Program-made: the position numbers and the translations under genes
DNA from: Guillardia theta CCMP2712
Taxonomy: Eukaryota > Protista > Cryptophyta
DNA length: 46,132 bases
Reading direction: 5' to 3'
NCBI RefSeq assembly: GCF_000315625.1
Contig: NW_005434623.1
Coordinates: 289,055 to 335,186 of the forward strand
The notes under the pieces: generated by a model
What the model was told of the DNA's origin: nothing
What the model saw: only the letters and a program-made list of their open reading frames with translations
Database searches by the model: none
In this document: positions 17,780-22,791 of the stretch, piece after piece
Layout of the letters: the number at the start of each line of letters is the position of its first letter
Numbering within the stretch: position 1 is the first letter of the stretch

Positions 17780-20700
17780 TCATTCATGTGCTCTGCTCAA
17801 AAGGCGGCTTGCACTATACTTGATCATCGTGTTGCTTTCAAACGTCTCCATGGCCCTAGTGACAGCCACGTGACCTCTTGCCTGCATGATAGCGTTCATG
17901 TTGTTGCTATTGTTCGAAAGTTCCTCCAGCACGGCACAGCCCCACTCCTGCACACCGTCATGCTCCCTGTGCGCCTCCATGCCCTCAACCACCACAGGGA
18001 TCCCCCCGACCTCGGCCACCCTCTCCTTGTTCTCGTCGCTGTACGCCAGGTTCCTCAACGCTGCACTCCCCCACTCCTGCACCCCAGCATTGCCTACATG
18101 CCGCCTCATACCATCCACGATAGCCTCTATCCCCCCCGCCTCTCTCACCCTTCCCTTATGCACGTCGTTGTACGTCAAGTTCCTCAGGGTCCCATTCCCC
18201 AGCCTCTGTATCGACGCAGAGTCTGGGTACAGTCTCATCGCTTCCACAATCGCCTCTATCCCTCCCGTGATCCCGATCCTGACGCTGTTCGTATCGTTTA
18301 TGGCCAGAATCAACAGGGCGCCCATCGCCTTCTCCTGCAACCCAAGGTGTTGCTTGTGCCTCCTCATCCCCCCTATGATCGCCTCGATTCCTGCAGGAAG
18401 ATTTCTTGACGAGAAGGGCAGCCGATGCCTGCCTTCGTCTCCTCTGCTGATCAGCAAGATCATGTGTGCTCCCATCTCCTGAACGTGAGCGTTCCATACC
18501 CAGACCTTCATCTTGTCGATCACCGCTTCAATGGCACCGACATCCCACAGCTCCTTATAGTGCTTATTCAGCTCCTTCCTTCTCTCTTCAGAAGCTTCTT
18601 TCCAATATCCCACCGCAATCTCCTTGCCGTCCGTTATGGCCAGCATCGACCTCACTACCTCCTCGTTGACTCTCTCTCTCAGCTCTCGCTTGAGGATGCC
18701 GACTAGTGCTGTCCAGTCCCTCCTCGCTTCTGCCTCGTGGATCTCAGTTACGATTCTCAGCTCAGCTATGGGAGACACCGTCACATCCGTGCGCAACGTC
18801 AGACTCATCGCCACGGTCGCAGCAGTTGGTCGTGTTGACTCCTCCTCCCTGAGACAGCACAGGACCAACTTTCCGCTCACTGATTCTGCATGTTGCCTGA
18901 CGACCTCTTGCAGCGCTTCTTCACCCTCTGGAAGCTTCGCCATGGTCAGCATGTACACCAGGAGCAGACCAAGTGAGTACACGTCGGACTTGGCAGAGGC
19001 TGCTCCTCCTCGTTTCCTTTCAGGCGACATCCAGTACAGAGTTCCAGCAAGGCGAGTGCTGGCCGTCGAAGTCGTTACCTGCTCTTGTTTGCACAGCCCA
19101 AAGTCAATGTACTTGGGAGATCCACTTGTATCCACCATCACATTCTGAGATTTGATGTCTTTGTGAATGATTCCGGCAGAGTGCAGGTACGCCAGGCCCT
19201 CTGCCAGCTCAATCATTAGCCTGTCTTGTCGCTTGCATCGCTCCTCGCCATCAAGCTCTTGCAGTATCTCCATTTCCTTCTGAAGGCTTTGGGGCAGCAG
19301 CTCGGTCACCATCATGTAGCATGGATCTCCGCAGTCGTCCGACACGATGCCCCCCACCAGCGCTACCACGTTGCGGTGGGACAGGCGGTAGAGGTTCTTC
19401 GCCTCTCTGAAGAAAGACTTCTTCAAGGCCTCCTCCTCGTGCAGTGCCTCGGGGTCGTGAGGTTCCTTGACTGCCACGTCAGCACCTTTGTACTTCCCCT
19501 GGAAGACAAGCCCGAACCCTCCCTTGCCCAGCACATGCTTTGGCTTCCCCCGCCCTGTCGTCTCGAACTGAAGCTCTCTGAAGTCAAGGGACCAAGGAGG
19601 CGTTTCGTCGGCCTCGTCCTTCACATCCAAGCTCGCGCTCGTCTTTCCCATGGCATCCTCTATGCTACCCAAGGCCGTCTCAAAGTGAAGGTCATTCAGC
19701 TCACGGGACATAAGGCGCAGAGCGTTCTGACTTTCGTCATGCTCGACCGGCTCGTCGGGGTCAGTAAGTGAATTTGAATTGTTCTCGTACATTGCCATGC
19801 AGAGTAAGCGAAGGCTGGAGTAGAGCTCCGAGGTTTTCCCTTGAAGCTGGGCCTTGAGTCTTCGTGCTGCCTCGGAATCACTGCTGGGAGGCACGTGTTT
19901 CAATGGCGATCCTTGGCCTTGAATGAAGCTACAGAGCGACTTGAGAGTAAAGTAGAGTTGAAAGAGCGCTACTCGAACAGTCTCCTCCTCCTCGCTCCTC
20001 CCTTTCACTTTCTTTAAGACAGGCGCCGTCAAATCCCAGGCGTTGCTTGTCAGTCTCATTAGTTCTCCCTTCTTCTCCAGGTTCTCGTCCGCCTGCTCCT
20101 TCAAGTTCTGTAGCATGACTTGTACCATCATGAGCACACCCGCTATGCTGCCTTGAAAGACAGTTTAGGAGGTGAAAGATTTTACATCATACTCTGACAC
20201 AATCACATGCTGCCATTAAAGAGAGACGTAGAGAGCAGGTTACAAAGAGATGAGAAAGGATGGTGGAAGACTTGGGTGGCAGCATGAGCTAATTGGCTAC
20301 TACATCTTGAAATCCCTTTGTTCTGCATGGAGAAACAACATCTGAAGAAACAACAACATCCCCCTTACATTCATACCTGGAAGAATCTGCTCTTGTTCAA
20401 CTGGATCGACATGGACTGATTCTCTTCCAATTCTCACTTGTACTTCAGCACTTCCTTCCTCTCTCTGTCCCTGCCATCACTCGGAAGGAAACAATCTTGA
20501 TGTAGCTTACCTCGGACTCTCCTACCATGGGTGCTGCTGACGTTTCTCCCCCCCCTTCCTCCTTACTTTCCCCTTCCCCTGTGTCTGTCTTACCGTGACA
20601 TCGCTCCAGACCAATCCGATCACCTTGTAAAAAGTCGCGCCATCGCTCAAACTGAATTCCTCTCTCCTCCAGAACCTGTTCGAACATCTCTTCCAGCTCC

Positions 20701-22791
20701 TCCACCCAGCCTTGATCTGCTGTCCTCCAGTCTGTCCTGCACTCCCCATGTCTTATCAACCATCCCGAGCTGCTTATAATTGTCTTGAAACAGATCTCCG
20801 TCCTCTTTAACTCCTTGCACCCGCCTCCTGTATCTCTCCCGCTCCCTGACTTTAGCAGAAAACGAGACATAAAGATGCTCTGGACCTGAGTCATTCTCAT
20901 CACCACAACGAAGCTCCCAGTCTCGATCGCTTTGCTCAACACGTATCCAGCAAACAGCATGTTCCTCTCTCCCTCATAGCAGAGGGCCTTGAGCAGGTAT
21001 CGCTCCATCCTGTCCAGCGCTTCCTGTCTGCTCACCGACGAGCTGTAGCTGCTCGGGACTGCCTCCATCTCCCACAGCTCGATCTTCTCTTCAGCCTCCT
21101 CCTTATCGTCCACACTTCTCCTTATCTCCTCCCGCACGGTGAAGTCAAGCACAGCAACCACAAGTTTCTCTTCTGAAAGATCCTCCAGCCTCCTCATGCT
21201 TCTCCACTCGTCAAACCGCGCGGAGGAGATCTTACCCCTCTGCAGCATCCTGCCGACTCGCTCCACCAGCTCCGGTCCGATCTCAGCTGCTACAGATCGG
21301 TGATACTCCAGGATGGACTTGGACGAAAAGGTCGTACCCTGATCCCTCATGAAAGCCAGCAGAAACAGCGAGCACAGTCTCCAGCTCGGCTCCTCCTCCT
21401 TGAGGCTTGACAGGAACCCCTTAAGTAGGGCCCTCACATGCTCCCTGAAGTCCTTCACCTGCTCTGTCGAGTACGCGGCTACGACGACCCTCGCTCGCTT
21501 CTGCTCAAACTCGTCCTCCTCAGCCGACTGATTCACCTCCCCCCCCTTCCTCTTCCTCGCTAGGGCTGTAGAGACGGCCTCCTTGATCTTTACGACCTCC
21601 TGAACGGTCTCGCCATCTTCCCACATGCAGAATCTCGGGAGATCCTGCAGGTTGATGCAGACTGCTGCCTGATCCTCCTGCTTGCTCCTCCTCGCACACT
21701 CCATCACAGCTTCTCGCAGCGGCCTGTTGAGGGCAAAGATCCCTTCCCTCTCATCCAACAGCTGCTGCACAAACTCTGATTCGTCATGAGCCCCCTCGCC
21801 ATGGCTGCAGGAGTAGCAAATGCACCAGCATCGAGGCAAGACGTCTTTCACCGCCTGCTGCGGGAGCAGCCGTTCTGTCTCCTGCAGACCCTCCCGGTAT
21901 CTGCAGGCATCGATGATCACAAGGAAACAGCAGCTGCTTCTTTCCTTCTTCGAGCTCTCCTCGAATCTCTTGATCAACTGGAAGACATGGGAAACAGATA
22001 GAGTGTAGTCCTCAACCTCCTCCTCGGTCTCAATCGCCCCAAAATCACAGGGGATCAGGACGTCTTCCTTGGCCCTTCCTGCCTTCATCCCATGGCCAGC
22101 GTAGAAGAGGACGACCAGCTCCGGCCGAGCTCCGCCAAGAGTAGCAAGACCGTTCCGCAGGAAGCGAATGAGGTCGGAGCGCGACTGTGGATCCTTCTTG
22201 AGGAGCGACCATGATCTCGGAGTCCTCCTCAGCTCTAGGTGCAGCCTAGTCGCATCCCTGACAGCGTTCTCCAGCTCCCAACCCGGCTGCACGTACTTGT
22301 CCGCTCCTATGCAGAGGCCGAACACCCGGGGCGGCTCCAGGAACAGAATCTCCTGCTGGAGAGGAGACCGCAGGAAGTTCATTCCTCTAGCGCACAGTGA
22401 CGGGATGCTGTTGAGGAAGAAACGTCAGGGGACATAAATGACTATTGAAGGGGATTTCAAAGGTGCAGGTCACTCAGTTCAATCAGAAAGATAGTGATTT
22501 CAGATTCTGGGTGTGAAATCAATATTTCATAGAAACATCTTGATACCTGTCACGCAGTGCAAGCAGCTTCCTGGCATGCTCGCTCTTTGCGACCTCTCGT
22601 ATCAGATCTCGCAGCTCCCCGATCTTTCCATTATCATCTCCTTTTTGAACGGCTTGTACTCTCCTCCGCTCCTCCACTCCATCTTGATCCCGCCTCCTTT
22701 CGTACACTTTCACAGCCACCGACAGAACCTCTTCTCCTCTCTTTCTCCTCCTCTCTTTCTCACGGGATCCTCCATCGCCCTCTGACGCCAT
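17780..22791 (-). CDS. Caspase-family (Peptidase C14) protease - unknown domain - MLKL-like helical bundle - Ser/Thr kinase - armadillo-repeat fusion protein
   Basis: Exons 22791-22547, 22386-20511, 20470-20377 and 20151-17780 join in frame via GT-AG introns (4587 nt, 1528 aa; 1445 aa if started at ATG 22382). Caspase motifs: FGLCIGADKY…LENAVRDA…LFYAGHG…VIIDACR. Kinase motifs: GKGGFG, VAVK, HKDIKSQN, DFG, GTLYWMSPE, SDVYSLG. Five GxIEAI/VV..M…VQEWG..AL.NL repeats. Confidence 0.85.

Follow-up and report, generated by a model that had tools for sequence, protein, structure and literature searches.

A Guillardia theta gene joining a caspase-fold protease, an MLKL-like helical bundle, a kinase and ARM repeats: a candidate immune or cell-death switch with a frameshifted allele

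Background

Metacaspase-like proteases are known from algae: nine have been counted in the cryptophyte Guillardia theta (Choi and Berges 2013, PMC3734836), and a 2017 review (PMC5756287) describes the algal members as p20 domains and nothing more. Cell death in G. theta follows a regulated, apoptosis-like course, and its executors are not known (PMC12462507). There is a precedent for an MLKL that is switched on by a caspase: the sea cucumber protein becomes active when a caspase cuts it (PMC11932488). Here we describe a minus-strand gene of G. theta CCMP2712 that combines a caspase-fold protease, an MLKL-like helical bundle, a kinase and ARM repeats. It lies in a 46,132-nt stretch of contig NW_005434623.1 (positions 289,055 to 335,186; hereafter the window, to which coordinates refer unless otherwise marked). 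In contrast to the algal proteases covered by the review, the family to which this protease belongs is large and multidomain. An earlier note, made from the letters of the window alone, had suggested that this architecture was undescribed, and targeted literature searches turned up no description of it. Our explanation is that the intact allele is an intracellular immune or cell-death switch and that the copy found here has been inactivated or strongly turned down; as a whole, we put this forward tentatively, at just short of an even call.

Gene structure and transcript

A single 5487-nt RNA contig (run X1) covers 17450-23156 with 0 mismatches and spans all exons of the gene, and its three GT..AG joints recur in runs X2 and X3, so that three studies agree on them. 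These runs are catalogued only as guessed RNA, but the spliced joints in their contigs identify them as RNA. The introns skipped are 22546-22408 (139 nt), 20510-20465 (46 nt) and 20376-20152 (225 nt). From ATG 22791, the four exons give 4602 nt encoding 1533 aa with 0 internal stops, and the 5' end of the transcript is at or above 23156. The gene structure as spliced here is almost certainly correct. The earlier note had joined ORFs of 645 aa and 785 aa, with an upstream exon, into one gene. The RNA bears this out, and the donors 22546, 20510 and 20376 and the acceptor 20152 are as the note had placed them. Two other boundaries have to be moved: intron 2 is 46 nt rather than 40 nt (acceptor 20465), which leaves an exon 3 of 88 nt (20464-20377) instead of 94 nt starting at 20470, and exon 2 starts at 22407 (acceptor 22408) rather than at 22386 (acceptor 22387). 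Two separate genes are ruled out by the single contig that crosses all exons. Expression cannot be read from contig depth, and the contig from X1 also takes in a convergent plus-strand neighbor.

Domains of the spliced product

Domain searches and structure prediction were run on the spliced model exon by exon, and the domain searches confirmed the caspase, kinase and ARM identities given in the earlier note. The single-chain C14 protease (21615-22334, minus strand, as are all features of the gene) has its His codon at 22094, its Cys codon at 21905 and S1 Asp codons at 22256 and 21911. The His-Cys dyad in a caspase-haemoglobinase fold makes it a member of peptidase family C14. It is not a true (Asp-specific) caspase, as its Cys motif is IIDACR and not QACxG and its S1 residues are Asp, aligned with the Asp of MALT1. 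The two S1 aspartates and the DxCR motif place it among the paracaspase/orthocaspase-like ("metacaspase-like") proteases; in sequence and fold it is not nearer to metacaspases than to paracaspases, and so it is not a type I-III metacaspase. The death and Ig domains of MALT1-type paracaspases gave no Pfam hits, and the protease is flanked instead by two domains here called N and X. Because its S1 pocket is acidic, as in MALT1 and metacaspases, the protease is predicted to cut after Arg or Lys. The earlier note had envisaged cleavage of the acidic linker at Asp/Glu-rich sites, which we reject in view of the pocket.

Pieces of the caspase region (22443-22224, which includes the end of intron 1, 22119-22002 and 21930-21830) also occur abutted and about 90% identical at at least 12 dispersed sites in the genome (C84, C184 (L029), C14, C78, C19, C87, C17, C1, C128, C32, C37 and C301). 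A repeat element seems to have captured these gene fragments at the DNA level.

The X domain (20598-21509; residues 300-603 of exon 2) lies between the caspase and the linker. It is a well-predicted alpha/beta domain of about 300 aa with a large helical insertion and is conserved across the family. Matches were found neither in Pfam (18 members searched) nor among PDB sequences or Atlas features; a TRADD-N-like identity, no more than a lead, likewise received no Pfam match for the 18 members. The predicted order of strands and helices is compatible with a split ferredoxin-like fold, and the matches from structure searches all came from the caspase part of the model. The X domain comes after the caspase in about 20 paralogs, after a CHAT-like domain in L021 and L025 and after TIR in P0097, and it precedes NACHT in L022 of this genome and in the environmental protein P0130. 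Because it adjoins CHAT, TIR and NACHT domains, X may be an adaptor of immune-type proteins, as these contexts suggest. L022 (C118), L021, L024 and L025 each carry the CHAT-like and X domains in one long ORF, to which NACHT is added in L022, an NLR-like gene.

Exon 3 (20377-20464) encodes the linker ahead of the bundle, with Arg residues that are possible cut sites. The bundle itself (19640-20151) is a real four-helix bundle with two further, brace-like helices. Its best structural matches are the MLKLs of human, mouse and Arabidopsis, in which, as here, a kinase comes after the bundle. The MLKL-like bundle of the earlier note thus stands as a fold, with MLKL as its best match, yet the match is not decisive: in the structural search the bundles of GCIP/HHM, THATCH and the gamma-tubulin complex match as well as MLKL does, and Atlas features point weakly to GCIP. 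A sequence search found no outside relatives of the bundle, and a profile search reached only cryptophyte-like bundle-kinases. The bundle is internal in this gene, in contrast to the N-terminal bundle of MLKL.

The Ser/Thr kinase (18800-19594; Pfam Pkinase, E-value: 3e-38) is non-RD and has all of the GxGxxG, VAVK, alphaC Glu, HKD, DFG and SPE motifs, with IRAK4 and CTR1 as best PDB hits. Because all catalytic motifs are present, with VAVK, HKD and DFG intact where MLKL has a degenerate pseudokinase, the bundle and kinase do not make up an MLKL in the strict sense. The remainder (17780-18799, with the stop codon at 17782-17780) is a helical linker followed by ARM repeats, four of them clear, recognized by PF23744 ARM_LRRK2 (E-value: 7e-10) and by the repeat motif. 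By Pfam, this gene has neither the Roc-COR tandem of Roco/LRRK2 proteins nor the NACHT or NB-ARC domain of NLR/STAND proteins.

Related genes in G. theta and Hanusia phi

The gene joins two modules, each of which is separately present in an expanded G. theta family. About 20 N-caspase-X genes occur in the genome with varied C-terminal parts, such as a GREB1-like helicase with a glycosyltransferase, dsRNA-binding motifs, a P-loop NTPase and, on C21, a bundle and pseudokinase; for most paralogs, these parts were viewed over about 1.5 kb only. Environmental proteins join caspases of the same clade to ARM, LRR-Roc-COR and U-box/LRR. Bundle-kinase genes occupy ten loci, eight of them stand-alone. 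In these eight, as in environmental relatives, the first Met lies at or beside the start of the bundle, and the kinase comes next, with ARM, WD40 or a CCCH finger after it in several. Only this gene and that on C21 cap the bundle with a protease module. The C21 sibling (caspase-X-bundle-pseudokinase) and the C44 gene (bundle-kinase-ARM) share modules with this gene at 30-43% identity. They differ from it in that C21 has an intact N domain, a replaced VAVK Lys and an altered DFG, while C44 is without the caspase module.

These comparisons bear on a non-lethal role, in which the protease and kinase would act on other substrates, as in a MALT1-like scaffold and signaling protease, and the bundle would serve only in oligomerization or regulation, like GCIP- or THATCH-type bundles or the plant MLKLs that act in immunity without death. 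The tied bundles and the GCIP-like Atlas features described above are consistent with such a role, as are the catalytically complete kinase and the position of the bundle, buried mid-protein; plant MLKLs do protect without cell death (10.1101/681015). We nevertheless consider it unlikely, since the stand-alone relatives hold the bundle at the very N-terminus, like executioner bundles, and the partners of the family (NACHT, TIR, CHAT and dsRBD) are of immune type.

Both halves of the gene have sisters in Hanusia phi, with identities of 61% for the caspase, 55-58% for X, 43% for the bundle, 66% for the kinase and 56% for ARM. The sister relationships have supports of 99/97 and 100/100, and the branch of this gene is no longer than theirs. 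Searches in other organisms found no full-length fused homologue.

Several other family members were observed. A tandem array at C97:155000-232400 (L004-L009, L018, L020, L023, L026 and L028) contains at least six N-caspase-X genes, some of them broken, and in L023 the caspase-X part continues in frame into a second N domain. L012 (C126), P0004 and P0007 form a subfamily, shared with Hanusia phi, whose caspase is dead (His to Arg, Cys to Tyr or Phe) and is followed by a P-loop NTPase. The stand-alone bundle-kinase genes L032-L035 (C23:60340-74282) are nearly identical and differ most clearly in the activation loop; two of these four are arranged head to head. L062, L063 and L064 (C29, C99 and C112) are bundle-kinase genes with long WD40 arrays (by Pfam for L062 and L063); canonical kinase motifs were not found in them by simple pattern, and they may be pseudokinases. 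Metagenome proteins very close to G. theta paralogs (L065, ENA ERZ930064; P0003, P0004, P0006 and P0008) suggest a wild Guillardia-like relative.

A 14-nt duplication in the N domain

The earlier note had placed the start of the protein at ATG 22791. The family N domain begins at ATG 23126 in another frame, and 22791 sits within an N domain that is frameshifted. Its first two thirds (22762-23126) belong to a 138-aa ORF that opens at ATG 23126 and continues in the wrong frame as far as the stop codon 22712-22710, and its last third (22547-22733), which ends exon 1, is in the frame of ATG 22791 and the downstream exons. Between them lies a perfect 14-nt tandem duplication (22734-22761); no other perfect tandem repeat in the gene has a unit of 8-19 nt. 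Against a profile made solely from paralogs, the sequence above 22762 scores 60 bits (model 27-101), and that below 22733 matches model 114-180 in a different frame with 8.4 bits, which exceeds all 1000 shuffles; the other frames of 22547-22733 contain stops. The 138-aa ORF matches paralog first exons by blastp (E-value: 5e-14). The whole N domain is in a single frame in 12 paralogs, and this locus matches them only as far as 22746.

Both 14-nt copies are present in the RNA contigs of X1, X2 and X3, and the gapless alignment of contigs from three studies rules out an assembly error. The frameshift is therefore very probably real; contigs drop rare variants, so a minor allele with a single 14-nt copy could go unseen. 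Two means of restoring the frame were rejected. First, a programmed -1 frameshift is contradicted by the absence of a canonical slippery heptamer. Second, a frame-restoring micro-intron (a 23-nt GT..AG intron, 22763-22741) is in no contig and lacks a pyrimidine tract.

With the N domain cut off by the duplication, the long ORF that comes first in the mRNA encodes 138 aa. Seven AUGs from 23126 on (eight counting 23163) precede ATG 22791, which the 138-codon ORF overlaps, and so we infer that little or no full-length protein is made in this strain. Without the break, the product would be about 1640 aa long. The duplication might instead be tolerated, if ribosomes scan leakily to ATG 22791 or re-initiate at ATG 22382 and so make a working protein of about 1530 aa without the N domain. 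ATG 22791 does have G at -3 and +4, members of one subfamily (L013, L014, L017, L019 and P0005) begin directly at the caspase, and the spliced mRNA occurs in three studies despite an early stop 165 nt above an intron, with 1533 codons open. The upstream AUGs and the overlapping ORF make this very improbable, as do four out-of-frame AUGs between the stop of that ORF and ATG 22382 and the want of either a slippery heptamer or a frame-restoring splice.

It appears rather that the allele in this strain has been inactivated or strongly turned down, and recently, because the 14-nt copies are identical, they are the sole lesion and the branches are no longer than those of the Hanusia phi sisters. A frameshift, together with other broken family copies (L020/L028) and near silence in run X16, would also be expected of a never-selected chimera that arose neutrally as domains were shuffled in a birth-and-death family and is now decaying. 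This, too, is a poor prospect: identity to the Hanusia phi sisters is 43-66% in each domain, no catalytic residue has been lost and the rate is not raised; C21 carries a second caspase-X-bundle-kinase gene; and there is a single lesion in 4.9 kb.

Proposed function

The splicing, the families and partners of the modules, the position of X beside NACHT, TIR and CHAT, and the intact dyad and S1 Asp pair all favor the immune or cell-death switch, and such a role of the intact gene is somewhat probable. In the proposed mechanism, the ARM repeats would hold the switch off or bind a trigger, and clustering would dimerize the MALT1-like protease and render it active. The protease would then cut after Arg or Lys, plausibly in the low-complexity linker, giving the bundle a free N-terminus like that of its stand-alone relatives and of MLKL, HeLo and RPW8 executioners, while the non-RD kinase would tune or relay the signal. 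We infer each of these steps; the parts, the intact catalytic residues and the family context are observed. Self-cleavage that releases the bundle is, taken separately, rather doubtful.

Four points weigh against this explanation. First, the death or immune role is deduced from the parts and the family context, and a conserved cut site could not be shown in the linker. Second, the match between the bundle and MLKL falls short of the level at which relatives can be told from common helical bundles, and sequence comparison does not support it. Third, the gene is almost silent in the sole raw-read run (X16). Fourth, the Hanusia phi halves are separate records, so that the fusion is shown only in the G. 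theta genome (this gene and C21), though it is likely conserved in Hanusia phi. A bolder version, which we regard as distinctly unlikely, is a cryptophyte single-chain, protease-gated, MLKL-like death switch in which a MALT1-like protease would cut its own chain and so uncap a pore-forming bundle under control of the non-RD kinase and the ARM sensor, as part of an undescribed innate-immune toolkit around the new adaptor X, the cultured strain carrying a recent, possibly selected or reversible, off allele.

A conserved family in which metacaspase-like proteases are combined with MLKL-like bundles, kinases, NACHT and nucleic-acid-binding domains offers concrete candidates for cell-autonomous algal defense, and MLKL-type bundles would extend to cryptophytes. 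Because the allele of the reference strain is frameshifted, a negative result on that copy would mislead.

Neighboring genes

A convergent plus-strand transcript (17450-17784) is abundant in the raw-read run and has its poly(A) at 17782-17784, on the stop codon of this gene; its 109-aa ORF (17339-17668, plus strand) has no Pfam match. The other neighbors look ordinary (at 11545-12060, 14644-14967, 23700-24206, 26537-27154, 30085-30552 and 35535-36353) and comprise an AAA ATPase, an FKBP, a NAD-binding epimerase-like gene divergent from this gene, two GNAT acetyltransferases and an RWP-RK factor.

Comparison with known systems

This analysis adds a precise set of splice sites, the frameshift, the prediction of Arg/Lys cleavage, the N and X domains and the sisters in Hanusia phi. 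Except for X and N, the parts are of known kinds, and no description of their combination was found in the literature searched; judged by the features that define MLKLs, true caspases and NLRs, the protein belongs to none of these classes. With MALT1, bacterial orthocaspases and algal metacaspase-like proteases it shares a single-chain caspase fold, YAGHG and DxCR motifs and an acidic S1 pocket, but it is without the death or Ig domains of MALT1. As in vertebrate and sea cucumber MLKL and plant AtMLKLs, a four-helix bundle and brace-like helices are followed by a kinase-fold domain, the bundle matching MLKL best but not decisively. It differs from them in its complete kinase motifs, its internal bundle, a protease in the same chain (predicted to be Arg/Lys-directed) and the ARM repeats that follow, and homology at the sequence level was not found. 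LRRK2/Roco kinases and SARM1 have in common with it LRRK2-type ARM repeats in a multidomain signaling protein, whereas this gene has no Roc-COR, LRR, SAM or TIR and its ARM repeats are C-terminal. Finally, in systems with the fungal NLR effector domains HeLo, Goodbye and basidiomycete MLKL-like (PMC9815663), or with RPW8, a bundle of MLKL type is likewise combined with a switch domain and C-terminal repeats. In the G. theta gene, by contrast, the switch is a kinase and not NACHT or NB-ARC, and a protease module caps the bundle.

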